Shown: positions 4,741-63,653 of the stretch, piece after piece
How positions within the stretch are numbered: position 1 is the stretch's first letter
Layout of the letters: every line of letters begins with the position of its first letter
Origin: Macrostomum lignano
Lineage: Eukaryota
Direction of reading: 5' to 3'
NCBI GenBank assembly: GCA_002269645.1
Contig: NIVC01000750.1
Coordinates: 1 to 64,000, forward strand
DNA length: 64,000 nt
Made by a program: the position numbers and the translations under genes
Notes under the pieces: generated by a model
What the model saw: only the letters and a program-made list of their open reading frames with translations
Told to the model about the DNA's origin: nothing
Databases searched by the model: none

Positions 4741-7684
4741 TTACCGCACCCGTTTCTCAGCCTTGGGCGACTTCGGATACAGCGGCGACCACTGAAGGCA
4801 GGCGGCATCGATGAGCTGCGGCTTCCTCGGCAGGATGCGCAGCAGGTGCTCTTGAACGGTGCGCTGCGGCAGGCACAGGTCGTAGCTGCCGCGCCAGTAT
4901 TGCAGCAGGCCGAGCCCGTGCAGAGTGTCTTGCACGTCATCGCGAGAGATCGCCGTGGCCGAGCAGATGTCGCGGACTGTGCAGGACGGATGCGACTGGA
5001 TGTAGTCTAGGATGGCGTACTCCCAGTAGCTCCTGTGGGGGTTGGGATTGAATCGGTGATCTAGCGAAGCACAGGGCAGTGGATACGAGGGGCGACACAG
5101 GAGAGACAGAGGCAGGCACGGCAGGGACACAGAGGCAGACACAACAGGGACACAGAGGCAGACAGCAGACACAGCTTGGACACAGAGACAGACACAGCAG
5201 AGGCAAAGATGCAGACGCAGCAGGGACACAGAGGCAGACAGCAGACACAGCTTGGACACAGAGACAGACACAGCAGAGGCACAGATGCAGACACAGCAGG
5301 GACACAGAGACAAACACAACAGGGACAGAGACAGACAGCAGACACAGCACGGACACAGAGACAGACACAACAGGGACAGAGACAGACAACAGACACAGCT
5401 TGGACACAGAGACAGACACAGCAGAGGCACAGATGCAGACACAGCAGGGACACAGACAGACACAGCAGAGACACAGACAGACACAGCGGGGACAGAGGCA
5501 GACACAGCAGGGACACAGACAGACACAGCGGGGACAGAGGCAGACACAGCAGGGACACAGACAGACACAGCAGAGACACAGACAGACACAGCGGGGACAG
5601 AGGCAGACAGCAGAGACACAGACAGACACAGCAGAGACACAGACAGACACAGCGGGGACAGAGGCAGATACAGCAGGGACACAGACAGACACAGCAGAGA
5701 CACAGACAGACACAGCGGGGACAGAGACAGACAGCAGAGACACAGACAGACACAGCGGGGACAGAGGCAGACACAGCAGGGACACAGACAGACACAGCAG
5801 AGACACAGACAGACACAGCGGGGACAGAGGCAGACACATAGACAGACACAACAGGGACAGAGACAGACAGCAGACACAGCACGGACACAGAGACAGACAG
5901 CAGACACAGCTTGGACACAGAGAGACACAGCAGAGGCACAGATGCAGACACAGCAGGGACACAGAGACAGACAGCAGACACAGCTTGGACACATAGACAG
6001 ACACAACAGGGACACAGGCAGACCCAGCAGGGACACAGAAGCTACCTACCTGTAGGTGACTTTCCCCAAATCGCTAAGCGGTTTCTCGGGGCCGCCAACC
6101 AGCCCCTCAACCCTGGCCAACTCGTAGCTCAGCGAAATGAGCAGCTTGCCGTAGCCTTTGCGCTGATGCGGCGGCAGGGTGAGGATGCAGGCCAGGTTGT
6201 TGCTATCCGGCGAGTCCTTCTCCTTGCTAAAATAGCCCACAATGTGACAGCCGTGCCGGTCCACTTCGCACAGAATGTAGAACAGGAAGCCGGACACGTC
6301 AAAGTACAGAGTTTTGTGATCCAGGAACAGCTTGGCCAGCAGGCAGAGGCACTGGCAGTAGAGTTTGCGCTGCTTGCCATCCACTTCAAATACTGACAGA
6401 TTGCCTTTGCGGTAGATTTCTCTGCCGGGGGGCTGGCGGTATTCGCACTGGGACAGGTGATATTTGTGCGACTTCTCCAGGCCCATGTACTTCAGGCAGT
6501 ACTCGCAGATCCACAGCTTTGTCTGCTTGCCGTATTCGTCAGGATAGGGGCTGAAGTACCAGGTGGTGATCTCGTATTTGCCAATCTGGATGAGGTCGAT
6601 GTACTTCACCTGGGATGGGGGCGGTGCGGGTGGGCAGGTGGTCTGCTGAACAACTTGTCAATAAATTATTATATCAATCAATCAATTGATTAGTAAAAAA
6701 TCTGCGAATTTGTATATCGATTAATCAATCTATCAACCAATACCAACCAGCTTGCAGATTGCATGTTTTATTAATTGATTGGTTGATTCTTTAACTGCTT
6801 GTTAGATTTTTTGATTAAATCAATCAACCATTAAATCGATCAATCAATAAAACATCAATCAATCTACCAACCAACCAACTAATCAATTAATAAATCAACC
6901 AACCATTAAATCAATCAATTGATCTATCTATCAATCAGTCAACCAATCAATCAATCTACTAACCAAGCAACTAATCAATTAATAAATCAACCAACCATTA
7001 AATCAATCAATTGATCTATCTATCAATCAATCAACCAATCAATCAATCTACTAACCAAGCAACTAATCAATTAATAAATCAACCAACCATTAAATCAATC
7101 AATTGATCTATCTATCAATCAATCGATCAACTTATGAGCCAATCAATCAACTAATCAATGAACCAATCAATCAATAAAACATCAATCAATCTACCAACCA
7201 ACCAATAAACTAATCAATCAATCACTCAATTCCCCTAGCTAGCCACCTTAGTCAGCTCCTGGTGCTCCCTCTCCAACGCGGCGGTGGCAGCGTCCATCTC
7301 TTCAACCGACTGCGGCACGTGGTGAATCTCGTGAAATTTCCGCTTCTGATGCCGAGTCAGGCGTGTCTTGTCCCCGCCGCTGGAGGCCAGCGGGTCCAGC
7401 CCGGCGGACTCGAGAGTCCCAGCTGGGTTGCTCACATCGATCCGGTCAATGCTGACCCATTCATCAAGGCGCCTGTCAAAGTCCAGATAGTGAATGAAAT
7501 ACTCCTGCGAGTTGGCCCGATCGGCGGTCTCCCGTTTGTGCACGATCTCGGCCGGGTACCACTGCCCGTCCGCGACTCGCAGCACTGGGAACCGGCCACC
7601 GATCTCCAGGGCCGGCTGCGGACCTGCAGCCGCTGCTGCTGCGCTTGATGCGCCCGAGGATGATGAAGCGATGGCTGAGGACAT
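4741..7684 (-). CDS. KAT8: MYST-family histone acetyltransferase KAT8/MOF; join(complement 7684..7247, 6609..6050, 5032..4741)
   Basis: Chromo-barrel ([16 protein letters not shown]), the MOF-type linker [37 protein letters not shown]2HC zinc finger (CEYCLKY), MYST motifs [24 protein letters not shown] and PEKPLSDLG, and C-terminal [19 protein letters not shown]. Splice phases are consistent. Confidence 0.95.
5085..6040. repeat. Degenerate GACA/CA-rich minisatellite in KAT8 intron 2
   Basis: Recurrent cagacacagc/gggacacaga units; source of the long low-complexity ORFs. Confidence 0.92.
6720..7230. repeat. Degenerate (AATC/AACC)n repeat in KAT8 intron 1
   Basis: Runs of aatcaatc and aaccaacc with a higher-order duplication. 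Confidence 0.85.
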
Positions 7685-8365: not shown

Positions 8366-8594
8366 TAATTCCTAAGTGTCCCGTGTCCTTAGCACTCGTA
8401 TATTGTTGTCTACATGCCTTGATAGCTAATGTCCCTATCCCTGGTTTTTGTCTGTCTCTTAAAGTATAAATGAAAATGAAAATAACAAAATTAACTAAGT
8501 ACTGCTTAACAAGAAGCAAGTTCGACATGCATAATAATATATTGAGAAAGTTGAAAACACTGGACTTAATTCATCCATATTACTAAAAAGCTAC

Positions 8595-11500
8595 CTAAAT
8601 GCAGTTCACAGCTACTCTGCCAGACGGTTCACTATCAAACAGCAGTGAATCCCTGGCCTGTTTAAGCTGAACTAAAATCTCGTCACTATGAATAGTGTTG
8701 CAGTTCAAGGCCAGCCGGATCACGCGTCTGCTATCTGTCTCTAAGAAATAGCGGCGCCTGCTATGGCGATACAGCGGATCGTAATGATCAGCTAGCAATA
8801 GATGGACCAGCTTAGGAATGTCGCCTGCAGCGGCTGCGGCAAGCCAGTTTGCCTGTGTGGATTTTGAATGGTGCCTGCCGAGTAGATTGAGCCTCTCAAT
8901 CAGCAGTTCAGTACGTTCTACAAGCGAGCCGTACTGTTCAATCAGATGCTTGACTCGATCGTCTGCACTTTCTGCTTCTAAAAGTATTCTGGGCGACCGG
9001 GCCAGGGTGGCTACTAGCGACTGCGGCAGAGAGCGATACCCAATGCGAACCGACTCGCATTCCAGCCACACCGGCTTGTCCGCGTCCAGCTGGCTGAGGG
9101 TTCGATAAAGCGACGATTCGAACGATTTCTGACTTGGTTGATCGGGTCTGTTGGGATCTGAGCCGAGCAGGGAGCCTCGGTGATTTGCTAGGGACTCCAG
9201 ATCGACTACCTGGCAATTGTAAAAAAGGGTTTATGTATGAAATAAAGTTTTAAATGACCCTTTTCGGGCAGGTTATTTACAGGCAATGCTACTCCATCTA
9301 GTCAGTTAAAACGTCCCCTTTAAGGCAGGTTACTTACAGACACTTCTAGTCTAGTTCTACTAAATCTAGTCAGTTAAAACGTCCCCTTTAAGGCAGGTTA
9401 CTTACAGACACTTCTAGTCTAGTTCTACTAAATCTAGTCAGTTAAAACGGCCTTTTTAAGGCAGGTTACTAACAGACACTTCTAGTCTAGTTCTACTGAA
9501 TCTAGTCAGTTAAAACGGCCCTTTTGAGGCAGTTTACTTACAGACACTTCTAGTTCTACTGAATCTAGTCAGTTAAAACGGCCCTTTTAAGGCAGGTTAC
9601 CTACAGACACTTCTAGTTCTACTACATCTAGTTCAGTTAAAACGGCCCTTTTCAGGCAGGTAATTACAGATTACTAACTAATGTTATGCTCGTAAGCAAA
9701 AACTTACACCTAAAATGGCTAAACTTAAAACGGCTCTTTTCGGGCAGCGCTTTAAAAACTAGACGAGATCTACTGTTGACCCTATAAAGCAGTAGAATTG
9801 CATACCTGCTCTCCTTGTCTAGCCAATCGTTCAAGCAGGTAAGTCTTGCCTGAACCTGTCAGCCCAGCTAAAACCACTGCGCGTTTAAGTCGTCCAACAG
9901 GCGGCTCAACACCGGCAAGGTCATTCAGTGCCTTCACAATGACGCGCCTGTAGGCCCGGTAGCCGCCGGCAAGAACTGTTGGCTGGTAGCCAATCTGGGA
10001 AAGCACGATCGCTAGAGAGTGGGAGCGCTGGCCGCCGCGCCAGCAGTAGATTAACGGCCTGGCGAGGATTTCAATAATTATGGAGAATTATGAAATTTGC
10101 AAGACACCTTGCGACGCATTTTAGGGCACTAAGATATTGGGATGCGAAGATAGAATTCTAATAATTTAGGGATTTTTTGCAATGGGAAAAGGGGATTTTG
10201 TAGACACATCTACTCCATCTAGTCAGTTTCTAACCAGGATTCTGGGAAAGGGGATATTGTGGGATTCTAGGAAAGGGGGGTTTTGCAGGATTCTAGGAAA
10301 GGGGGATTTTGTAGGATTCTAGGAAAGGGGGATATTGTAGGATTCTAGGAAAGGGGGATTTTGTAGGATTCTAGGTAAAAGGGGATTTTGTAGGATTCTA
10401 GGTAAAGGGGATTTTGTAGGATTCTAGGTAAAAGGGGATTTTGTAGGATTCTAGGTAAAGGGGATTTTGTGGGATTCTAAGAAATGGGGATTTTGTAGGA
10501 TTCTACAAAAAATGGGGATTTTGTAGGATCCTAGAAAAACTGGGATTTGTGGGATTCTAGGAAATGGGGATTTTGTAGAATTCTAAGAAATGGGGATTTT
10601 GTAGGATTCTAGGAAATAAGGATTTTGTAGAATTCTAGGAAATAAGGATTTTTGTAGGATTCTAGGAAATAAGGATTTTGTAGAATTCTAGGAAATAAGG
10701 ATTTTGTAGGATTCTAGGAAATAAGGATTTTGTAGAATTCTAGGAAATAAGGATTTTGTAGGATTTTAGGAAATAAGGATTTTGTATGATTCTAGGAAAT
10801 AAGGATTTTGTAGAATTCTAGGAAATAAGGATTCTGTAGGATTCTAGGAAATAAGGATTTTGTAGGATTCTAGGAAATAAGGATTTTGCAGGATTCTAGG
10901 AAATAAGGATTTTGTAGGATTCTAGGAAATAAGGATTTTGTAGGATTCTAGGAAATAAGGATTTTGTAGGATTCTAGGAAATAAGGATTTTGTAGGATTC
11001 TAGGTAAAAGGGGATTTTGTAGGATTCTAGGTAAAAGGGGATTTTGTAGGATTCTAGGTAAAAGGGGATTTTGTAGGATTCTAGGTAAAGGGGATTTTGT
11101 AGGATTCTAGGTAAAAGGGGATTTTGTAGGATTCTAGGTAAAGGGGATTTTGTGGGATTCTAAGAAATGGGGATTTTGTAGGATTCTACAAAAAATGGGG
11201 ATTTTTTAGGATCCTAGAAAAACTGGGATGTGGGATTCTAGGAAAATGGGGATTTTGTAGAATTCTAAGAAATGGGGATTTTGTAGGATTCTAGGAAATA
11301 AGGATTTTGTAGGATTCTAGGAAATAAGGATTTTGTAGGATTCTAGGAAATAAGGATTTTGTAGGATTCTAGGAAATAAGGATTTTGTAGAATTCTAGGA
11401 AATAAGGATTCTGTAGGATTCTAGGAAATAAGGATTTTGTAGGATTCTAGGAAATAAGGATTATGTAGGATTCTAGGACGCTAGACTTACCTAAAATCGA

Positions 11501-11900
11501 CACTCTTATCAGCAAAGTGAGTGCCCAGCAGTTCACCGATTTTCTGACTAATCACAGATGCTCCCAAGCGTCGCCCATCAAACGGCGATCGGGCGAATGT
11601 TTTACCAATCGCTGCTCGATCCCCGTCGCCTAATAGCGGCAGATTAACAGCTCCGGGCAGGTGATCGTCTGCGAATTCTGACGGAGTTCGAACGTCAATC
11701 ACTTCGTCATAGGCTGCCCAATTCAATGGGTTGGGTTCTGTTTGAATCGAACTGTTGTTATTGTTATGCTTGATGTTGTAGCTAAATGTGCTGCACCTGT
11801 TTAACTGGTAGCGGCTGTACACGCGACACACCGTCGCTAAGGCCGCGGTGGTGACACGGCAGCGACCGAACTGCAACCAAGCCAGTGACAGGTTGTACAT
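8595..11900 (-). CDS. selU: tRNA 2-selenouridine synthase (SelU/MnmH/YbbB) homologue, about 425 aa, with N-terminal extension; join(complement 11900..11491, 10058..9806, 9209..8595)
   Basis: Rhodanese domain (IDVRTPSEF..HLPGAVNLPLL..RAAIG; YCWRGGQRS; GGYRAYR) fused to a P-loop domain (LAGLTGSGKT; VDLESLANHRGSLLG; QPSQKSFE; WLECESVRIG; HYDPLY), collinear with E. coli MnmH as I recall it. Two GT-AG introns join in phase (410+253+615 = 1278 nt). Confidence 0.92.
9285..9670. repeat. About 60-68-bp tandem repeat (about 6 copies) in SelU intron 2
   Basis: tctagtcagttaaaacg..ccttt..aggcaggttac..acagacacttctag recurs. Confidence 0.88.
10235..11478. repeat. About 26-bp minisatellite (ggattctaggaaataaggattttgta)n in SelU intron 1
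   Basis: Direct inspection. Confidence 0.95.
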
Positions 11901-11984
11901 GAGAACAATCAAGGTACGTTTCTGATAATTAGGGCGATTTTAATAGATCTTTACAAAATTCCAGGAGGCTCTTAGAGCGATTGG

Positions 11985-13885
11985 TTTCTGGGGCGATTCT
12001 AAGGGAGGTTCTGGGGCGATTCTAAGGGGAGATTCTGGGGCGATTCTAAGGAGGATTCTGGGGCGATTCTAAGGGAGGTTCTGGGGCGATTCTAAGGGGG
12101 ATTCTGTGGCGATTCTAAGGGGGATTCTGTGGCGATTCTAAGGGGGATTCTGTGGCGATTCTAAGGGAGGTTCTGGGGCGATTCTAAGGGAGGTTCTGGG
12201 GCGATTCTAAGGGAGGTTCTGGGGCGATTCTAAGGGAGGTTCTGGGGCGATTCTAAGGGAGGTTCTGGGGCGATTCTAAGGGAGGTTCTGGGGCGATTCT
12301 AAGGGAGGTTCTGGGGCGATTCTAAGGGAGGTTCTGGGGCGATTCTAAGGGAGGTTCTGGGGCGATTCTAAGTGGGATTCTGTGGCGATTCTAAGGGGGA
12401 TTCTGTGGCGATTCTAAGGGAGATTCTGGGGCGATTCTAAGGGGGATTCCGGGGCGATTCTAAGGGGGATTCCGGGGCGATTCTAAGGGAGATTCTGGGG
12501 CGATTCTAAGGGGGATTCCGGGGCGATTCTAAGGGGGATTCCGGGGCGATTTTAAGGCGATTCTGGGGCGATTCTAAGTGGGATTCCGGGGCGATTCTAA
12601 GGGGGATTCTGGGGCGATTCTAAGGGAGATTCTGGGGCGATTCTAAGTGGGATTCTGGGGCGATTCTAAGGGGGATTCTGGGGCGATTCTAAGGGGGATT
12701 CTGGGGCGATTCTAAGGGAGATTCTGGGGCGATTCTAAGGGGGATTCCGGGGCGATTCTAAGGGGGATTCCGGGGCGATTTTAAGGCGATTCTAAGGGAG
12801 GTTCTGGGGCGATTCTGGGGCGATTCTAAGTGGGATTCTGGGGCGATTCTAAGGGGGATTCCGGGGCGATTCTAAGGGGGATTCTGGGGCGATTCTAAGG
12901 GAGGTTCCGGGGCGATTCAAAGTGGGATTCTGGGGCGATTTTAAGGGAGATTCCGGGGCGATTCTAAGGGGGATTCTGGGGCGATTCTAAGGGGATTCTG
13001 GGGCGATTCTAAGGGGGATTCTGGGGCGATTCTAAGGGAGGTTCTGGGGCGATTCTAAGGGAGGTTCTGGGGCGATTCAAAGCGGGATTCTGGGGCGATT
13101 CAAAGTGGAATTCTGGGGCGATTCTAAGGGAGGTTCTGGGGCGATTCTAAGGGAGGTTCTGGGGCGATTCTAAGGGAGGTTCTGGGGCGATTCTAAGGGA
13201 GGTTCTGGGGCGATTCTAAGGGAGGTTCTGGGGCGATTTTAAGTGGTATTCTGGGGCGATTCTAAGGGAGGTTCCGGGGCGATTCAAAGTGGGATTCTGG
13301 GGCGATTTTAAGGGAGATTCCGGGGCGATTCTAAGGGGGATTCTGGGGCGATTCTAAGGGGATTCTGGGGCGATTCTAAGGGGGATTCTGGGGCGATTCT
13401 AAGGGAGGTTCTGGGGCGATTCTAAGGGAGGTTCTGGGGCGATTCAAAGCGGGATTCTGGGGCGATTCAAAGTGGAATTCTGGGGCGATTCTAAGGGAGG
13501 TTCTGGGGCGATTCTAAGGGAGGTTCTGGGGCGATTCTAAGGGAGGTTCTGGGGCGATTCTAAGGGAGGTTCTGGGGCGATTTTAAGTGGTATTCTGGGG
13601 CGATTCTAAGGGAGGTTCTGGGGCGATTTTAAGTGGTATTCTGGGGCGATTCTAAGGGAGGTTCTGGGGCGATGCTAAGTGGGATTCTGGGGCGATTCAA
13701 AGTGGAATTCTGGGGCGATTCTAAGGGAGGTTCTGGGGCGATTCTAAGGGAGGTTCTGGGGCGATTCTAAGGGAGGTTCTGGGGCGATTCTAAGTGGGAT
13801 TCTGGGGCGATTTAAAGGGCAATTCTGGGGCGATTCTAAAATGGAGATTCTGGGGCGATTTTAAGGGAGATTATGGGGCGATTCT
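11985..13885. repeat. 23-bp minisatellite (ggggcgattctaagggaggttct)n upstream of SelU
   Basis: Period of 23 (12181, 12204). Confidence 0.96.
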
Positions 13886-14615
13886 ACGGAAGTTTTTAAA
13901 GTCGTTTTAGCAGAGATACTTCACGATGACAATATCTATTTACAGTAAATTGGCAAGCTATTAAACAAAAACATTAAACAAACAAGAAAGGTTAAACAAT
14001 TCTAAAAGCAGTGTATTTATATGAATGGCATTTGATCAAAGCAGTCCTTGACTCCCTCAACACTAAATCTACTAAAATCAGAACTGTCTACAGTTTACAT
14101 TTCAAAACTGAATAAATTATCATAGGGAATGCATTTGACACCGTTACAATTTACTGTATTACAAGCGTTACACACTACTGAAGATATAGTAGATAGTCTT
14201 TACTTACAATTTTACAAAAAAATCGATATAAACCGACACCAATAGCTAAATAAAATATCAAACGAGTCATAAAATTACCCGATGAAAACGATGAAGCGCC
14301 ACAGAGCCCGACGACTCAAAAACGACAATACATCCCGGTACAAGTCGCCCCAGTCACCAGTGAGTTGTTTCTGACTCTTTCGCAATTCTTGTTAGGGTAA
14401 GGTTTTCAACCGGACAGCCAAAGCAAAACAAATTGCACAGTTGTATATCATATTTTATACCTTTGTAATGGTTTACCTTCAAGAAATTTTAAATTCAAAA
14501 CGTTACATTTCCAATGGTGTCTACACAAGTCTATGTTTAACCATGTGTTCCATAAAGTAGATGTATAGCAGAGAAATTAGTGGGGTCGAGCATTTACAGA
14601 CTACAGCTTTTTTAT

Positions 14616-14989: not shown

Positions 14990-15086
14990 TACACAGACAG
15001 ACAGACAGACAGACAGACACTAAGACAAACAGACAGACAGACAGACAGACACTAAGACAGACAGACAGACAGACAGACAGACACTA

Positions 15087-15119
<33 letters not shown>

Positions 15120-15709
15120 CACAGAGCCCTCACCTTGAAGCCAACAGCCAGGGCAGCGTGCAGCAGCATGGCGGCAGTCAACAATCCCACAGCTGTCCAC
15201 CGCTCCCCAGAGGACACGCTGGGCCACAGCGAGAGGGCCAGCACAGTGCCGGACAGGGCCATGGCCAGCAGTATCAGCGCCCACTGCACAGCAGCCAGCT
15301 GTATAACGCACAGCACGGACACGGGGATGTAGATTGACAGGGAATAGCCGTACAGGCACAGCAGCTCCAGGTAGGCATACTTCTCTGGCACCTGGCGCCA
15401 CCAGGTGACCGCCCACAGCAGCAGCGGCACCAGCCACCAGTACAGATAAATTGCCGTGGCGGCGAATGTCACCTTGCGAAAATCGTAAACCCACACGTAG
15501 TTGCCGCCGGCTGCTGATGTTTGGAAATAATCCGCCAGATTGCCGGCTATGGCGGTGACGAACACCAGGGTGGTGCACACCCAGAACGGGCCGTACAGGT
15601 CCGGCGAGTGACGGATATCGTCAGATACTAGATTGCGGTTGGGCCTGGGCACGAAGGAGCTGAGGATGCGCTTGCCCACCTGGGAATGGATAGATAGATA
15701 TATAGATAC

Positions 15710-15759
<50 letters not shown>

Positions 15760-15805
15760 GGATGGATAGATAGATAGATAGATAGATATATACATAAATA
15801 GATAC

Positions 15806-15875
<70 letters not shown>

Positions 15876-15876
15876 G

Positions 15877-15910
<34 letters not shown>

Positions 15911-15917
15911 AAAATAG

Positions 15918-15989
<72 letters not shown>

Positions 15990-16429
15990 GTAGGCAGATA
16001 GGCAGACAAGTAGTTTTATAAACACGCTAAGCCACCCACCTGGTTGGTATCCACATCAAAGAACTGTTGATAATAGGCCATAGACAGCACGCTGGGCTTT
16101 TTAGCTGCTTCTTCAGTGGTTTCGCCATCTTCTCCATCAGCTCCGCCATCTCTGATCAGCTTGGCCCTGTCTCCAGCGGTGCTACCCGGTCTGTCATAAT
16201 GCACATCGTCATCTTCGTCTCCATCATCGAGGCCCACAGAGGTGTCCCTAGCTGGGAATTCTTTGTGCGGACTGTTCAAGTCCACTTTGGTGTATTCCAC
16301 GTCTAAAGGAGAAATTGAGGGCAGAAATATAATCTTGAAATAATTAACTAATTTGCAATTTCTCTTTTAATGCTAGTAAAGGTTAGAAAAAAACTAATAA
16401 TTTAACTCACCTTTAAAACTTCTAGCCAT
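14616..16429 (-). CDS. YIPF1: Yip1 domain family protein YIPF1/2; join(complement 16429..16411, 16302..16040, 15679..15134, 14744..14616)
   Basis: [86 protein letters not shown] is the YIPF1/2 signature. All four exons are phase-consistent. YIPF1 versus YIPF2 cannot be resolved. Confidence 0.93.
14783..15122. repeat. (GACA)n microsatellite, YIPF intron 3
   Basis: Direct inspection. Confidence 0.97.
15688..16005. repeat. (GATA)n microsatellite, YIPF intron 2
   Basis: Direct inspection. Confidence 0.97.
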
Positions 16430-31077: not shown

Positions 31078-34000
31078 ATGGACTTGCTGTTGACAACTGA
31101 AACTCAATTAACCATATATAATATCACCAATAATAGTGTCTGGAATTCCACAGCCAGTGTTACACCCTGCTCATCTTCTGATTGCGTCTCGCATATACAG
31201 CTGGCACCATGTGGCCAGTATGCCCTGGCATTGTCAGAGTCAGGTCGTCACCTACTACAGGTATATTCTTTTGTTAATGTTTTCAGTGTTTCTGTAGCTT
31301 GGGGAGTGATTTCTGTACCATCTGAAGCTTCTGGTGTGCGAAGTTGAGACCTGAAGCTTCTGGTAGAAGTAGAGTTGATAGCATCTGAAGCTTCAGGTAG
31401 AGGTAGAGTTGATAGCATTTGAAGCTTTAGGTAGAGGTAGAGTTGATAGCATCTGAAGCTTCAGGTAGAGGTAGAGTTAATAGCATCTGAAGCTTCAGGT
31501 AGAGGTAGAGTTGGTAGCATCTGAAGCTTCAGGTAGAGGTAGAATTGATAGCATCTGAAACTTCAGTTTTAAGTAGAATTTATAGCATCTGAAGCTTCAG
31601 TTTGAAGTAGAATTTATAGCATCTGAAGCTTCAGGCTCGTATAACTTACAGTTTGTAAGGCAAACCTCTTTTCTGTTAAAGACAATTCTTCCCAAATCCT
31701 CATCTCTCTCAGATCCCGCTGGCCAGCCTCTCAGACCAGCTGTCGCATCGGCAGCTTCCGGTTGCCGGGCAGCACAGCTGCATCGCTCTGTCGCCGTACA
31801 CAGGCCGGAGCCTGTCGGCCGGCTCCCACACCGGCCAGCTCACTGTCTACGACGCACCTGAAGGTCATTGCCGTTGGCAACGCCCTTCGCTTCCCTCGCC
31901 AGTTGTCTGTTTAGCCTTTGATCTGGCCGCCAGAGACGATTCCCGCTGTTTAATTGGCTATCAGAGCGGCGATGTTGCCTTGGTGAACATCGGCACTGGC
32001 TACAGGCACTCACCGATGGGTCTGAGGCCTGAGGATCGTTCGGCTTGCGAGTGCCTGGCAACCAGCCAGTTCTGTCCGGGCGTGGCCGCTGCCGGCTACC
32101 GTAGCGGCGCCCTGCTGCTGTGGGACACGAACTCTGGCAGCTCGCGTAGCGTGTTGGCCTGTCCGAGTCGAGAGTCTGGCTCGACCGGCTTCTGTCAGCC
32201 TAGGCGAGCTGTACAGTTCTCTCCAGTCAATGCCAGTCTGCTCTGCTCAACCAGCTGCGACTCCAGCGCTGGCCTGTACGACTCTCTAGCCGGCATTGAA
32301 GTAGGCCGGATTCGCCTGCCGGATGCGGCTACCAGGGGATTAACGTTTAGCCCGGATGGCCAGCTGGTCCTGGTTGGGACTCGAACTAGCGGCTGTCTGG
32401 CCTACGATCTCAGACGAATGCACCAGCCTGTGATGCAAATTCCTGCCGCGGCTGCTGACACTGCTGCTGACCGGGCCAGATCAGTGGCTGTCATTGATTT
32501 GAAGGTTTGTCTTTTCTGTGTCAGATAATGTCTGAATGTGTCAGATAACGCCTGAATGTGTCAGATAATGCCTGAATGTGTCAGATAATGCCTGAATGTG
32601 TCAGATAATTCCCGAATGTGTCAGATGATGCCTGAGAAGTCAGATAATCCCTGAATGTGTCAGATAATGCCTGAAAATGTCAGATAATGCCTGAATGTGT
32701 CAGAAAATGCCTGAATCTGTCAGATAATGTCTGAATGTGTCAGATAATTCCCGAATGTGTCAGATGATGCCTGAGAAGTCAGATAATCCCTGAATGTGTC
32801 AGATGATGCCTGAAAAGTCAGATAATCCCTGAATGTGTCAGATAATGCCTGAAAATGTCAGATAATGCCTGAATGTGTCAGAAAATGCCTGAATGTGTCA
32901 GAAAATGCCCGAAGGTGTCAGATAACTTCCGAATGTTTCAGATAATTCCCGAATGTGTCAGATAATGCCTGAATGTGTCAGATAATTCCCGAATGTGTCA
33001 GATAATGCCTGAATGTGTCAGATAATTCCCGAATGTGTCAGATGATGCCTGAGAAGTCAGATAATCCCTGAATGTGTCAGATAATACCTGAAAATGTCAG
33101 ATAATGCCTGAAAATGTCAGATAATGCCTGAATGTGTCAGAAAATGCCCGAAGGTGTCAGATAACTTCCGAATGTTTCAGATAATTCCCGAATGTGTCAG
33201 ATAATGCCTGAATGTGTCAGATAATGCCTGAATGTGTCAGATAATTCCCGAATGTGTCAGATGATGCCTGAGAAGTCAGATAATCCCTGAATGTGTCAGA
33301 TGATGCCTGAGAAGTCAGATAATCCCTGAATGTGTCAGATAATGCCTGAATGTGTCAGATAATTCCCGAATGTGTCAGATGATGCCTGAGAAGTCAGATA
33401 ATCCCTGAATGTGTCAGATGATGCCTGAGAAGTCAGATAATCCCTGAATGTGTCAGATAATGCCTGAAAATGTCAGATAATGCCTGAATGTGTCAGAAAA
33501 TGCCTGAATGTGTCAGAAAATGCCCGAAGGTGTCAGATAACTTCCGAATGTTTCAGATAATTCCCGAATGTGTCAGATAATGCCTGAATGTGTCAGATAA
33601 TGCCTGAAAATGTCAGATAATGCCTGAATGTGTCAGAAAATGCCCGAAGGTGTCAGATAACTTCCGAATGTTTCAGATAATTCCCGACTGTGTCAGATAA
33701 TGCCTGAATGTGTCAGATAATTCCCAAATGTGTCAGATGATGCCTGAGAAGTCAGATAATCCCTGAATGTGTCAGATAATGCCTGAATGTGTCAGATAAT
33801 GCCTGAATGTGTCAGATAATGCCTGAATGTGTCAGATAATTCCTGAATGTGTCAGATACGGTATTGAGGTGTCTAACAATGTCTAATTGGTGTAAGTTTT
33901 TGGATTATACCCGGACATGTCACATAAGTTGCTTGAATGAAGTGCCCGACCCTGTAACTGCCCTAACAATGGTTACCTAGCAACACGCACTCAAATGTCA

Positions 34001-36419: not shown

Positions 36420-39400
36420 ATGCCGTCATCTGTGACTACTCAGCAGCAGCCGCTGCCGCCTCCCCTTCAACTGTTTGTGGTCGGCGCCAGTGGAGGCTCT
36501 GACGCTGCGTCCCACCAGCTGCAGCAGCGTCATCAACAGCAGCAGCATCTTCAGTTCACCTGGCAACAGGATTTCGGTAGCGGTATTGTCTATAGCCTTA
36601 CCGAACTCTTGCCAATACCGTTGCCATGCGGAATCGCAGTAGACGATCTGGTTCCGGTTCTGTCTAACCGGCACCAGCTGCCGGAGTTCACCTGGCCTCA
36701 GTTGCGTCAGTCGCTAACAGAATTTGTTGTTAAAAGTACAGCCAATTATTTTGATAAGATTTGCGAACAAAGGCGCGCTGCCGTTGGCGCCGTGGGCTTG
36801 GGCGGCGCCGCGGATTTAAACAACTGCGCTGAGCAGCTCTGTAGGGAGTTCCGGCTTGTTAAGGTAAATAGGGCTCTTAGTGATTAATTAGTTCTTGGAG
36901 TACTCAGTCAGACTGGTTATGATCTATTCTATCCTCTATTATATCCTTACCTGCATTCTATCCTCCATTATATCCTTACCTGCATTCTATATCCTCTATT
37001 ATATCCTTACCTGCATTCCATTCCCCAATTTATTCTATGTGCACCCTGGTGCACTTTAAGCGACATTGTCACACAACCGGCGAGAGGCCTTACTGCCCAT
37101 TCCACCGACTCCCCTGAGCAGGCACACAAGCGCGCGGATACGTACGCAGTCATACGCGCAGGCACACACTCACACAGGAGTGTACAGCGGGCCTAACTTT
37201 ATTTATCGTTAGGCATGTACACTTCACTGCGCCTTTGGGGTTGTTGGCCTCAAACTGGTCGTTAATTGCACAAGCAGGGCGAAGCCGAGATTCCAGTTTA
37301 GCCCATAGATTAATGCGACTGCTTTTGGAATCGAGCCTGGGCCCCTGGACTCCCTTCAACACCACAACCCGCACCCTCTCGCAGACCTATTCAACCCTGG
37401 TGCAAACTGCCGGTGTCCAAGCCGACCACGACGAGCCTGACTGCGGCGACTCCGCATCGGTGCTGTCGTCCTCGTTGGCGTCGAACTCCTCGCCGTCGCA
37501 CAACACGGCCAACAGCTTCGATTCGGTCAGCGGATGCGGCGGCAGCGCCGGCTCCGATGTTGAACGTTCAGAATTTCGTCGAGCCTATTTGCAATTGGTG
37601 AATTGTGCACCCAGCAAAGCTGCTAAACTGGTCAAGATTGAACGGGCTATGGCTAAACAGGTTGAAGATCTGCTGTCCAGCGCTGGCAGGGCTATGCGAG
37701 AGTTGTCAGCTAAACAGCAGGCTGTGATGGAGGAGGCGGTGGCTCAGAGTGGCCACAGATACACCGGTGAGAGCTGAGCTTTATTTAGTGTGTTTTATAG
37801 GTTGTCTCTCGAGCAATCTTCCCTAGAGCATTATTCTCTAGATCTACTAATAAAATCAATTTATCCATCCATCCATCAAGGGGGGCCGTAGCCCAGCGGT
37901 AGCGCAGCTGCTCTGGTGTGCCAGCGACCCAGGCTCGATTCCAAGTGCAGTCACATTAATTTGGGGCTGAATTGGAATCTCGGCTTGGCTCTGCTCGTGC
38001 AATTAACGGCCTTGAGAGCCAACCCCCCAAGGCGCAGTGAAGTGTACATGCCTAACGATAATATAAAGTTAGGGCCGCTGTACACTCCTGTGTGAGTGTG
38101 TGCCTGCGTACGTATCCGCGCGCTTGTATGCCTGCTCAGGGGAGTCGGCGGAATGGGCAGTAATGCCTCTCGCCGGTTGTGTGCCTATGTCGCTTAAAGT
38201 GCGCCAGGGTGCACACAACCCCCCTGCCTCTAAAAAAAAAAAAAAATCCCACAAAATCATAACAGTTTTTATGCAATATTCAGTTAGAATCGCGATACTT
38301 AATAACGCGCGTGGGATCCCCTCGCACACAGGGGAAGCTGCTGCCAAGCCTTTTCAAGGGCATGACGCAGCTCCGCAACATTCTGCTGTGGTGGATTTTC
38401 GTTTCGAAAGCAGAATTTTAGAAAGTCCCAGACATGCTCGATGAAAAAAATTCATCGATCGCTTAGAGGGTGGAACTTTTGTCTGATTACTGAGTGTATG
38501 TCAATATGTGATCGATTTCAGAAAAACAGCTCAACCGATTTTCTTGAAAATTGCACCATTCGATCAGATATTTTCCCGTGACAGTACGTGCTGTGGCTAA
38601 GAAATTGCTCTATCCCAAAATGATTAAATATTCGGAAAAAACATGCTTTTTGCAAAGGTCAGCAGACTTTTCGACTTGAAATGTGTTGTGATCATTGTAG
38701 AGCAAATACTGAAAGTCTGAACTCTGATTCTTATAAAGATTTCATCACAACAGACTTTATATATCGTCACTTTACTTTCTGAATCGTGACTCCGACTTGA
38801 TTTGAGTTGATTTGAGAAAAAAGTATGGGAAGCATAGCACAAGACTTGGTTTAGATTGCGTAACCAAATTGTTACGTTTAATGGAGACTGATACTTGCTG
38901 ACTGACTACATCAGAAGAAATCTACATGCAGCAGCAACTTTACTTGTGATAGTTTGCATCTGGCATCAGGTTGAGACGACATGCAAAAATCTGTCTTGGA
39001 AACTGCAAACTCATATTTAAACATCGATCCAGGCACAGGGACACTGTGAACTATTGTGGCTCATGGGAGGATTACTGAAATGTCAAGACTCGTGAGGGGA
39101 TTGCTGAAATGCTGTGGCTCATAAAGAGAAGAGGTTGCTGAGATGCCAAAGGGTCAATTGGGAGTTGTTGGTAGGCCAAGCATCAAAGGGAGAGTTAGGG
39201 TTAAGTCGTGGCTTAAAGGGAGCCTTTGGTGAGAAAGCTTGCATGAGGGGTAATGCTTTTTTGCTTAAAACATTTTCTTTAAGACACTAACAATCATGTA
39301 GATCATGTAGTAATTGTTGAAATTTTTGGTTCATGCGGGTTGCTCAGATGCTTTGAGCCAAAGCTCATAGAGGATCTGATATCTCTCATAGAGGCTAGAC

Positions 39401-42400
39401 ATATTTTTGATAGCTTGGCTTTCAGGGCAGATACTTTTTGATTTAAAAATAATTTTCCCTAAAAACTTAACAATGGTGACTGTACATAACCTAAATATTT
39501 ACATGTAGTTTATTCAAACATTTTTATTTCTATCTTTGTTGACTCCCCAACAGGGGCGCCGATTATAGTTAGCCTAGGCGTGTTAAAACAGGGTGTAACG
39601 CACGGCAGCCCGCCCGCTGCAATCAATCATATATGGCTGACTTCAATAAATAAAAAACTGCATATAAGTATCTAGTTAATGCTATTACAACTTGTATATT
39701 TCGAAAGCAAAGCTTAGTACTGCTTAATATTGCTTAGTACAGTTACTATTTTTTCGATTCACAAAACAAAGTTTTGGCCATAGACAATTTCTTAGATTTC
39801 ATTCTTTCTTTCTCTAAAGTGCTGGTGCACAAATGTAGTAGCTCCGCCCCACACCCCCGCAATGGGGTTCCGCGCCCCTTGACCCCGCTGTCTTTTGACT
39901 TTGCCATAGACATTTTTAGCGCGGGCCGTGAAACCGACTGAATGCATTGGAGTAAATGGGATTTTACCATAGACAGTCTCAGCGGGCCGTGAAACCGACT
40001 GAATGCATTGGAGTAAATGGGATTTTACCATAGACAGTCTCAGCGGGCCGTGAAACCGACTGAATGCATTGGAGTAAATGAGATTTTACCATAGACAGTC
40101 TCAGCGGGCCGTGAAACCGACTGAATGCATTGGAGTAAATGGGATTTTACCATAGACAGTCTCAGCGGGCCGTGAAACCGACTGAATGCATTGGAGTAAA
40201 TGAGATTTTACCATAGACAGTCTCAGCGGGCCGTGAAACCGACTGAATGCATTGGAGTAAATGGGATTTTACCATAGACAGTCTCAGCGGGCCGTGAAAC
40301 CGACTGAATGCATTGGAGTAAATGAGATTTTACCATAGACAGTCTCAGCGGGCCATGAAACCGACTGAATGCATTGGAGTAAATGAGATTTTACCCCATA
40401 GACAGTCTCAGCGGGCCATGAAACCGACTGAATGCATTGGAGTAAATGAGATTTTACCATAGACAGTCTCAGCGGGCCGTGAAACCGACTGAATGCATTG
40501 GAGTAAATGAGATTTTACCATAGACAGTCTCAGCGGGCCATGAAACCGACTGAATGCATTGGAGTAAATGAGATTTTACCCCATAGACAGTCTCAGCGGG
40601 CCATGAAACCGACTGAATGCATTGGAGTAAATGAGATTTTACCATAGACAGTCTCAGCGGGCCATGAAACCGACTGAATGCATTGGAGTAAATGAGATTT
40701 TACCCCATAGACAGTCTCAGCGGGCCATGAAACCGACTGAATGCATTGGAGTAAATGAGATTTTACCATAGTCAGTCTCAGCGGGCCATGAAACCGACTG
40801 AATGCATTGGAGTAAATGAGATTTTACCATAGACAGTCTCAGCGGGCCATGAAACCGACTGAATGCATTGGAGTAAATGAGATTTTACCCCATAGACAGT
40901 CTCAGCGGGCCATGAAACCGACTGAATGCATTGGAGTAAATGAGATTTTACCATAGACAGTCTCAGCGGGCCATGAAACCGACTGAATGCATTGGATTAA
41001 ATGAGATTTTACCATAGACAGTCTCAGCGGGCCATGAAACCGACTGAATGCATTGGAGTAAATGAGATTTTACCCCATAGACAGTCTCAGCGGGCCATGA
41101 AATGAACGCTAACTACTGTATGACACTAATATGGATATTGGTATATTGCTGGTATTGTCTAAAAACGAGTATCAATGCAGATGACATTTCAAGGTGATCA
41201 GAGCATGCGTCTCTTACCTGTTCTCCCTAACAGACGAGGACATCAACCGTCTGAACGCTCAGCACGTGTCCAATTTAACTGGCGAAGCGCAGCGTTGGCG
41301 CAAGGAGCTGGTAATGCTGAAAGACCGACAGAAGGCCGCCCATCGTCAGCTGGTATTGTGCCAATTGAACAGCCTAGCGGCGCTGGATTCGCGCCTCCTG
41401 CCAGCTGCCGAACCTGTCGCCAACCCGTCCGGCCCAGATGCTGGCGCGGAGTCGTCTACGCCGGCTGATGGCGACGCCAAGCTGTCCGAACTGAGCGGCG
41501 AAGCTGGCATTAACGTCACAGAAGATCCCAACGAGTCTTATCGCAATCCGATAGCCTGGGAGGAAAGCTTCACTATTAGCGTTGGCACTCAATTAAAGAC
41601 GCAGCATAATTTGCGCTTATTAAGCGCAGATTTGAGACGATTGTTGAGTCCAAATTCTGCGGCTGATCGACTGCAGACCGCATTGAGTCTGTACTCTGAC
41701 TCGCTATCCGCCTTCGTGCTCTTGTCTAGCCGCGATCAGGTTAGCGATTGGCACCTCTTCAGGGTTTCTTTCACAAGCTGGAGACTTCACATCCTTGCCA
41801 AGTCCAGCTGATCACTCTTTCACAAGCTGGAGACTTCACATCCTTGCCAAGTCCAGCTGATCACTCTTTCACAAGCTGGAGACTTCACATCCTTGAGCAC
41901 ACCAGCTGATCACCCTTTCACAAGCTGGAGACTTCACATCCTTGACTTGATCCTTGACTTCATATCCTGACTAATTTCTATATTACCAACTTGCTTTCAC
42001 CCGAACTGATTGATTTTTTAAGGCCTGCAATCCGCACGTGTCGGCTTCTCTGAAATTCAGCGATCTGTGCGAACGGAGCGCCGATTTTCACTTCGACGAC
42101 TATGGCCGCCAAATGGAGTCGATATGGCGGCGGATTAATGGTGGGTTTGTTTTTCTTAGCCAATGGCAATGTGCCCGATCATATATAGTCACTTGGTCAC
42201 CTATCTAGTCACTTGGTCACCTTTCTAGTCACTTGGTCACCTATCTAGTCACTCGGTCACCTATCTAGTCACTCGGTCACCTATCTAGTCACTCGGTCAC
42301 CTATCTAGTCACTTGGTCTCCTATCTAGTCACTTGGTCTCCTATCTAGTCACTTGGTCTCCTATCTAGTTACTTGGTCACCTATCTAGTCACTTGGTCTC

Positions 42401-50027: not shown

Positions 50028-63653
<13,626 letters not shown>

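Follow-up and report, generated by a model that had tools for sequence, protein, structure and literature searches.

A stretch of 64,000 nt from the flatworm Macrostomum lignano (assembly GCA_002269645.1, contig NIVC01000750.1, positions 1 to 64,000; hereafter the window) contains on its minus strand a gene, here called selU, that is predicted to encode a full-length member of the MnmH/SelU family of tRNA 2-selenouridine synthases with the catalytic residues kept. An initial annotation of this DNA, made from the letters alone, had described an intact open reading frame (ORF) of about 425 residues spread over three exons, with two GT-AG introns holding host-type minisatellites, in an animal genome. 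Both descriptions were confirmed: the joined exons give a coding sequence of 1278 nt with 425 codons in an unbroken frame, and both introns are of the GT-AG type, one with a 26-bp and the other with a 68-bp array (Table 1). We describe below the structure of the gene, its membership in the MnmH family and its probable origin from a bacterium, and then consider what the protein could do in an animal.

Gene structure and genomic context

Bacterial MnmH homologues align gap-free across both exon junctions (...SVDFR|PLIYC... and ...RQGEQ|VVDLE...), and because they run through these points without indels, the splice model of selU can be fixed to the nucleotide. At the 5′ end, the ATG is preceded by an in-frame TAA at a distance of 14 codons, and the Met encoded by this ATG, at position 1, is the single Met residue in the whole protein. 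The sole AG between the TAA and the ATG (TATCAG) reads TATCAA in both of the paralogues described below, and an upstream coding exon was therefore rejected. Taken together, the single Met, the upstream TAA and the loss of the sole upstream AG in the paralogues mean that translation must begin at or near the genomic ATG and that the N-terminal extension is part of the protein. An acceptor-like TTGCAG|TTC is also present at codons 10/11 of exon 1 (11868-11873), in frame with an ATG ending the M. lignano spliced leader (SL), which would give a protein starting with MFGRCRV...; the 3′ end of this leader is indeed ATG (PMC8629364). An SL-donated start at this site would be an alternative N-terminus with nothing supporting it, as the 5′ ends in the annotation fall at codons 6, 12 and 16 and not at TTGCAG|TTC, and SL trans-splicing as the source of the start codon is thus unsupported.

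Two more selU copies were found in the same assembly, one (L001, gene model g1) on a 234-kb contig and the other (L002, g2) on a 286-kb contig. In both loci, as in the window, a Yip1-domain gene, selU and a MYST acetyltransferase gene follow each other in this order on one strand, and the colinearity of the window with the two loci extends over about 21 kb. In all three copies (3/3), the ATG and the stop codon are kept and the two GT-AG introns lie at identical positions, all of the ORFs are intact, and the repeat families of the introns are likewise kept in the two paralogous loci. Three syntenic copies with identical introns and intact frames exclude bacterial contamination and mis-assembly; selU is genuinely integrated in the nuclear genome of M. 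lignano. A contaminating, mis-assembled or dead gene might account for the bacterial affinity of the protein and for a GC content at third codon positions (GC3) below that of neighbouring genes. It would, however, have to be reconciled with two spliceosomal introns where the bacterial homologues are continuous (the ORF is uninterrupted in 80/80 loci of the prokaryotic genome scan described below), with the colinearity with two animal contigs, and with three of three copies being intact and having omega below 1, and is hardly conceivable. The view that the contig is animal and not bacterial was thus borne out by the syntenic copies, the introns and the animal flanking genes.

The gene had also been placed between KAT8 and YIPF1. 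The downstream acetyltransferase has human KAT8 as its top match in the PDB (332 bits, versus 260 for KAT7 and 250 for Tip60), which agrees with the first name, and the upstream exon belongs to the YIPF family by its Yip1 Pfam domain, whereas an assignment specifically to YIPF1 was not reached. Minisatellites of period ≥10 make up 34% of the window (71 rows of Tandem Repeats Finder output, some of which represent one array at several periods), so the selU introns are built of the same material as the rest of the genome. The 3′ flank of selU contains 32/48-bp repeats. The 227 nt 3′ of the stop codon (8368-8594) match L001 with 100% and L002 with 97.4% identity, a conservation at least as high as that of the coding exons, which suggests a constrained 3′ untranslated region or recent gene conversion between the copies.

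Elsewhere in the window, exons at 37235-41811 (+) and 31980-32528 (+) belong to a homologue of subunit 3 (Fy-3) of the FERRY endosomal RAB5-effector complex and to a WD40-repeat protein, both ordinary animal genes on the strand opposite to selU. A 12-bp tandem repeat (AGACAGATACTG, 137 copies) at 51798-53436 gives rise to overlapping "ORFs" of 450-570 residues on both strands; these were rejected as genes, being repeat artefacts with spurious weak Pfam matches. Neither a tRNA gene nor an Rfam family turned up when the 64-kb window was scanned for them.

Table 1. Positions of the parts of selU, of the tandem repeats in and beside it, and of the flanking genes (numbering of the window)
Feature	Position	Strand	Description
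KAT8/MOF-type MYST acetyltransferase	4741-7684	-	Downstream neighbour, same strand as selU
KAT8-type domains (Pfam)	Tudor-knot 7235-7684; zf-MYST and MOZ_SAS 6046-6609; C-terminal MOZ_SAS part within 4741-6036	-	
selU exon 3	8595-9209	-	615 nt including TAG stop (8595-8597); SelU-specific C-terminal part of the P-loop domain with DLESLANHRGS, ECESVRIG and YDPLY
selU intron 2	9210-9805	-	596 nt, GTATGC...TGCCAG, phase 0
68-bp tandem repeat, 5.8 copies	9289-9670		Within intron 2
selU exon 2	9806-10058	-	253 nt; rhodanese active-site loop PLIYCWRGG and Walker A GLTGSGKT
Walker A GLTGSGKT	9842-9865	-	In exon 2
C142 codon	10043-10045	-	In exon 2, within PLIYCWRGG
selU intron 1	10059-11490	-	1432 nt, GTAAGT...CGCCAG, phase 2
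26-bp minisatellite, 47.5 copies	10236-11478		Within intron 1 (most of its length)
selU exon 1	11491-11900	-	410 nt, codons 1-136 plus 2 nt; ATG 11898-11900; N-terminal extension and first half of the rhodanese domain including the MnmH-specific insertion
N-terminal extension	11721-11900	-	About 60 codons without counterpart in bacterial MnmH (alignment); candidate targeting peptide
23-bp minisatellite, 82.7 copies	11986-13886	.	Occupies most of the interval from the Yip1-family gene to the selU start
Yip1-domain (YIPF-family) exon	15020-16009	-	Upstream neighbour, same strand as selU; Pfam PF04893, E=1.7e-11

Family membership, catalytic residues and predicted fold

The protein exceeded the trusted cut-offs of three NCBIfam equivalog models for tRNA 2-selenouridine(34) synthase MnmH, with 379.6 bits against a cut-off of 266 for NF008752 (E=1.2e-113), 305.8 bits against 219.75 for TIGR03167 and 276.8 bits against 241 for NF008750. 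The full-length match is thus to MnmH and not to another rhodanese or P-loop family, as had been anticipated from the motifs. The MnmH hallmark motifs noticed at first reading are all present as quoted and in order, namely YCWRGGQRS (residues 141-149), GGYRAYR (168-174), GLTGSGKT (202-209), DLESLANHRGS (224-234), ECESVRIG (271-278) and YDPLY (364-368). Pfam Rhodanese (PF00581) matched with E=3.9e-10 and is also precomputed for the M. lignano proteins in the databases, for which the SelU-specific PF26341 (AAA_SelU) is precomputed as well.

An alignment was made of the M. lignano protein, E. coli SelU (31% identical to it) and seven bacterial proteins nearer to it (42-45%). In this alignment, the rhodanese catalytic Cys, C142 of a C-x-x-G motif, corresponds to E. 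coli C97, the Walker A Lys of GLTGSGKT, which follows the G-x4-GK[T/S] pattern, K208, to K155, G113 to G67 and R174 to R129. C97 is an absolute requirement for selenation by the E. coli/Salmonella MnmH, K155 of the Walker A motif is needed for geranylation, and substitution of G67 or R129 leads to more geranylation (PMC4830565). The rhodanese domain of MnmH further contains an insertion of about 33-36 residues, including G67, that is not found in single-domain rhodaneses (PMC4830565). The flatworm protein possesses this MnmH-specific insertion: its residues ~89-125 align with E. coli residues 42-80, with two single-residue gaps opposite Q58 and R79, the latter being an E. coli-specific residue that is not in the other homologues either. 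In an alignment with 56 homologues, 70 of the 77 columns conserved at ≥90% were kept in the M. lignano protein.

The AlphaFold model, built on an alignment of homologues, is confident over residues ~50-410, with a mean predicted local distance difference test (pLDDT) score of 87.1 and a predicted template modelling (pTM) score of 0.83. The N-terminal domain of the model can be superposed on 3g5j, a rhodanese domain of the SelU type, with a template modelling (TM) score of 0.79, and its C-terminal domain resembles P-loop nucleoside monophosphate (NMP) kinases and dephospho-CoA kinases. No full-length SelU structure was found, the rhodanese fragment 3g5j being the only solved piece of SelU.

Expression, public gene models and selection

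The GenBank annotation of the M. lignano assembly Mlig_3_7 was not predicted ab initio; it consists of the 'coregenes' part of a transcriptome assembled from RNA-seq with the genome as guide (PMC5730564). The GenBank models BOX15_Mlig025034g1-g3 come from this RNA-seq-derived annotation, and the products of g1 and g2 are colinear with the three-exon model. As these models derive from RNA-seq and their splice junctions match our exon model, selU is probably expressed. The best database match (98% identity, M. lignano) falls in a 90% cluster comprising three GenBank genes and three UniProt entries, which are named 'hypothetical protein, partial' in GenBank and 'Rhodanese domain-containing protein' in UniProt and in no case SelU or MnmH, a gap in the databases. 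The public models of the window copy are defective. GenBank g3 (PAA77333.1) is a fragment of 131 residues identical to the product of the window copy, and UniProt A0A1I8FYH4 misses 10 residues (FESSLYRTLS) inside exon 3. The identifier 'Mlig025034' was not found in literature full texts or in the supplements of M. lignano papers, where expression tables were sought.

Selection was assessed from Nei-Gojobori pairwise estimates of synonymous divergence (dS) and of the ratio of nonsynonymous to synonymous divergence (dN/dS), with binomial P values against neutrality. The window copy and L001 gave dS 0.026 and dN/dS 0.37 (P=0.04), the window copy and L002 gave dS 0.052 and dN/dS 0.22 (P=1.6e-4), and L001 and L002 gave dS 0.052 and dN/dS 0.16 (P=2e-5). 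The amino-acid changes among the copies are conservative and lie outside the motifs. Although the numbers are small, they are concordant, and they indicate purifying selection on the SelU protein ever since the duplication.

Evolutionary origin

Nothing with more than 50% identity to the flatworm protein was found outside Macrostomum among 5.8 billion clustered proteins. The best non-Macrostomum matches are bacterial MnmH proteins with 42-50% identity. Among the 120 best matches listed, all those carrying an organism name are bacterial MnmH; several of the rest are labelled 'tRNA 2-selenouridine synthase' by JGI and nothing more, and the majority are metagenome proteins. An exhaustive HMMER search of 1.84 billion representatives with exon 3 as the query returned only the M. 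lignano cluster at E<1e-30, the next matches being 43-46% identical. In a scan of one genome per prokaryotic species, the identity was 39-47% to proteins of Burkholderiales, Rhodocyclales, Caulobacterales, Rhodobacteraceae, Thiotrichales and several cyanobacteria. The mean identity is about 40% to each of the alpha-, beta- and gammaproteobacteria and the cyanobacteria.

Ten unusually long matches were looked up, and among them the sole further eukaryotic homologue found was A0A0G4FJC9 (P0297) of the alga Chromera velia. It has 39% identity to the flatworm protein, its own nearest relatives are betaproteobacterial, and it is placed elsewhere in the neighbour-joining (NJ) tree (126 sequences, 100 bootstraps), in which a long stem (0.545) leads to the flatworm clade. 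No eukaryote besides these two occurs in the top 120 matches of either the flatworm or the Chromera query, in a database that includes UniRef and EukProt. The initial annotation had expected that homologues might already be annotated in other marine invertebrates; there were none among the best matches listed, for which no systematic taxonomic search was made.

The gene had been suggested to result either from horizontal acquisition or from patchy retention. Since its relatives outside Macrostomum are at most 50% identical and bacterial, and the Chromera homologue is more distant and has bacterial neighbours of its own, the former is favoured and, judging from these comparisons, fits much better than the latter. 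Under vertical inheritance, an ancient eukaryotic or organelle-derived mnmH would have survived in Macrostomum and some protists, with losses in all other lineages. A homologue is indeed encoded by at least one further eukaryote, C. velia, and the long flatworm branch, for which no donor has been pinned down, would also be compatible with such a history. On the other hand, the flatworm protein is nearer to many bacteria (45-50%) than to Chromera (39%), the best matches of Chromera itself are betaproteobacterial, the top 120 matches of both queries hold no other eukaryote, and very many independent losses across Metazoa would be required. Patchy vertical retention is therefore very improbable. 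We consider it likely that an ancestor of M. lignano acquired a bacterial-type mnmH/selU horizontally and that it has since then been an ordinary nuclear gene. SelU genes in eukaryotes seem to have a sporadic distribution and independent origins. The age of the transfer is bounded from one side: it would predate the genome duplication, and the two introns and the divergence of the protein suggest that it is much older.

Proposed pathway and points against it

After its transfer, the gene would have been domesticated by gaining two spliceosomal introns, which were filled with host minisatellites, and an N-terminal extension of about 55-60 residues, which supplied the sole Met codon. It lies between a YIPF-family gene and KAT8, and the genome duplication copied it together with these neighbours, which gave the three intact copies. 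The protein is predicted to bind tRNAs with 2-thiouridine (s2U) at wobble position 34 (Lys, Glu and Gln isoacceptors). Its P-loop domain, with geranyl pyrophosphate, would S-geranylate s2U34, and C142, the rhodanese Cys, with selenophosphate from the flatworm SPS2, would convert the geranylated intermediate to 2-selenouridine (se2U) at position 34. The E. coli SelU is known to follow such a two-step route via an S-geranyl intermediate to 2-selenouridine (PMC7694415, PMC4830565). A supply of selenium is plausible, a single SPS2 having been reported for flatworms (PMC4561486). M. lignano would then be the first animal with an enzymatic route to selenium- or geranyl-modified wobble uridines, with a domesticated bacterial SelU that receives its selenium from the SPS2 of the animal itself, possibly with a mitochondrial location and possibly with a shift towards geranylation caused by the residue G109. 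We put this forward tentatively, as a nearly even proposition.

Several observations count against this proposal or against the horizontal origin that underlies it. First, residue 109 (codons 109-112 are at 11565-11576) is Gly in all three flatworm copies and Ala in 56/56 aligned homologues. In an 8-sequence alignment including E. coli SelU, this column corresponds to A63 of Salmonella MnmH, one of three invariant sites at which substitution has such an effect that, in A63P, geranylated tRNA accumulates (PMC4830565). With Gly109 replacing the A63-equivalent Ala, geranylation and selenation may be balanced differently than in E. coli, and the flatworm enzyme could possibly stop at, or favour, geranylation. 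Second, the NJ sister of the flatworm clade is a small group of uncultured bacteria (P0003, P0005, P0007 and L005) with a bootstrap of only 45-47%, and P0005 of this group lies within a dense bacterial men-gene operon. No lineage stands out as the bacterial donor in the genome scan, the NJ tree or the cluster names. Third, the GC3 of selU is 0.55, versus 0.62-0.79 for neighbouring exons (0.73-0.79 for the KAT8 and Yip1 exons). Fourth, all six public models lack the first 5-15 codons, and because the annotated transcripts are 5′-truncated, the presence of the ATG within the mRNA is a prediction. Finally, the copies diverged recently (dS 0.03-0.05), and the selection test is made on only 17-27 substitutions per pair.

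The codon preferences of selU correlate with those of neighbouring exons (r = 0.69). Its low GC3 may be a residual compositional sign of foreign origin or may reflect low expression.

The protein could also be expressed and conserved without being a selenouridine synthase any longer, acting as a geranyltransferase only, as a general sulfur or selenium transferase, or as a tRNA-binding protein with a new role. The change from the invariant Ala at the A63 position would agree with this, as would six further changes at conserved positions, including T100K and N120K/R in the MnmH-specific insertion (at position 120, Lys in the window copy and g2, Arg in g1). In addition, the 5-methoxycarbonylmethyl-2-thiouridine (mcm5s2U) of eukaryotic cytosolic tRNAs is not the native substrate of SelU. 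However, the catalytic Cys, the Walker A motif, G113, R174 and 70/77 conserved columns are kept, the scores are well over the equivalog cut-offs, and purifying selection acts over the whole protein. A loss of the synthase activity is thus unlikely, and the two-step route to se2U34 remains our preferred reading of the enzyme.

N-terminal extension and site of action

Homology to bacterial proteins begins near residue 60. The extension of about 55 residues without an acidic residue before E55, which the initial annotation had taken for a putative mitochondrial presequence, is confirmed: no Asp or Glu precedes E55, and the net charge over residues 1-40 is +5. Residues 26-29 read RVYS (RVFS in the paralogues), which fits an R-3 processing motif. 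In the AlphaFold model, the extension has low confidence (pLDDT below 50-70) and a single helix, so it is probably not part of the fold. The maximum hydrophobic moment of the extension was, however, reached by 17-36% of shuffles of the same residues. The charge, the lack of acidic residues and the R-3-type motif fit a presequence, whereas the hydrophobic moment is not above that of shuffled controls.

If the extension were a cleavable presequence, the enzyme would be imported into mitochondria and act on wobble bases of the 5-(carboxy)methylaminomethyl-2-thiouridine ((c)mnm5s2U) or 5-taurinomethyl-2-thiouridine (taum5s2U) type in mitochondrial tRNA-Glu and tRNA-Gln (and tRNA-Lys). On the one hand, the extension has no bacterial counterpart; its charge, its RVY|S (in the paralogues RVF|S) match and its poorly modelled single helix would be in keeping with such a signal; and the natural substrates of bacterial SelU are closer to organellar than to cytosolic tRNAs. 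The Chromera homologue likewise has a long leader resembling an organelle signal, which is a parallel and not evidence. On the other hand, the amphipathicity is no better than that of shuffled sequence (fraction 0.17-0.36), and any captured bacterial ORF would need new 5′ sequence for a start codon, so that the extension alone proves nothing on targeting. Selenophosphate, moreover, is made by a cytosolic enzyme, and we know of no mitochondrial supply of it. In rhabditophoran mitochondria AAA encodes Asn; the mitochondrial tRNA-Lys would accordingly be expected to have a CUU anticodon, which lacks U34, and would be no substrate. Mitochondrial import is thus a plausible hypothesis, but less likely than not. 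As a working hypothesis, the site of action could be either the cytosolic mcm5s2U tRNAs or the bacterial-like mitochondrial tRNAs, the extension being compatible with a presequence.

Novelty and significance

SelU is an established enzyme family, and GenBank and UniProt already contain the sequences under uninformative names; what is new is the unexpected animal host and the eukaryote-specific additions to the gene. Reviews of selenium biology treat selenouridine and its synthase (YbbB/SelU) as a prokaryotic trait (PMC9312934, PMC4561486), and a review of modified nucleosides lists 5-methylaminomethyl-2-selenouridine (mnm5se2U) in all three domains (PMC7694415). Our literature search found no paper linking Macrostomum, flatworms or animals to selenouridine synthase. 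To our knowledge, no eukaryotic enzyme has been assigned to mnm5se2U. A selectively maintained nuclear SelU of an animal is thus a concrete candidate enzyme in a tractable species, RNA interference and transgenesis being routine in M. lignano (PMC5730564). If the proposed activity is real, the selenouridine trait would be extended into Metazoa, and the physiological role of se2U or S-geranyl-2-thiouridine (ges2U) could be tested in an animal. The gene would also be a clean example of a bacterial tRNA-modification gene domesticated by an animal through intron gain, a new N-terminus and maintenance through genome duplication. If the protein were inactive or restricted to the genus, it would represent no new pathway but an oddity of horizontal transfer. 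The significance is further tempered by an occurrence that looks lineage-restricted and by the fact that single-enzyme horizontal transfers into invertebrates are no longer rare.

Comparison with known SelU systems

The rhodanese fold is shared with the animal rhodaneses (TST, MPST and similar proteins, single-domain or tandem). What sets the flatworm protein apart is the MnmH-specific insertion together with the SelU P-loop domain, both absent from these animal rhodaneses; its full-length match is MnmH. The archaeal split SelU of Methanococcales (TIGR04568 and TIGR04569) is built of homologous rhodanese and P-loop modules, to which the flatworm protein gave weak matches of 52.8 and 30.3 bits, but the archaeal enzyme consists of two polypeptides with the gene order reversed. 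As these scores are far under the respective cut-offs (200 and 180), the flatworm SelU belongs to the fused bacterial type.

C. velia is likewise a eukaryote that encodes a full-length SelU homologue, whose N-terminal leader is long and whose nearest relatives are bacterial; in the database the protein is named 'Rhodanese domain-containing protein'. The two proteins differ in that the Chromera Walker A motif is GRTGTGKG, and because they are only 39% identical and not sisters in the NJ tree, the Chromera SelU is probably an independent acquisition. The Chromera leader, of about 150 residues, has by reading of its sequence a signal-peptide-like start (MRFLRVLAQCLASLPSTVRA|F), which suggests plastid targeting.

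A further close known system is the SelU (MnmH, YbbB) of E. coli and Salmonella. The flatworm protein shares with it the two-domain layout, in which a rhodanese domain containing the MnmH-specific insertion (about 36 residues) precedes a P-loop domain, the four residues C97, K155, G67 and R129 (C142, K208, G113 and R174 in the flatworm), and scores above the cut-offs of the MnmH equivalog models. It differs in being only 31% identical (42-50% to other bacterial MnmH), in its nuclear gene with two spliceosomal introns, in the N-terminal extension of about 55-60 residues and in the Gly at the A63 position. Its available substrates would be eukaryotic cytosolic or mitochondrial tRNAs.

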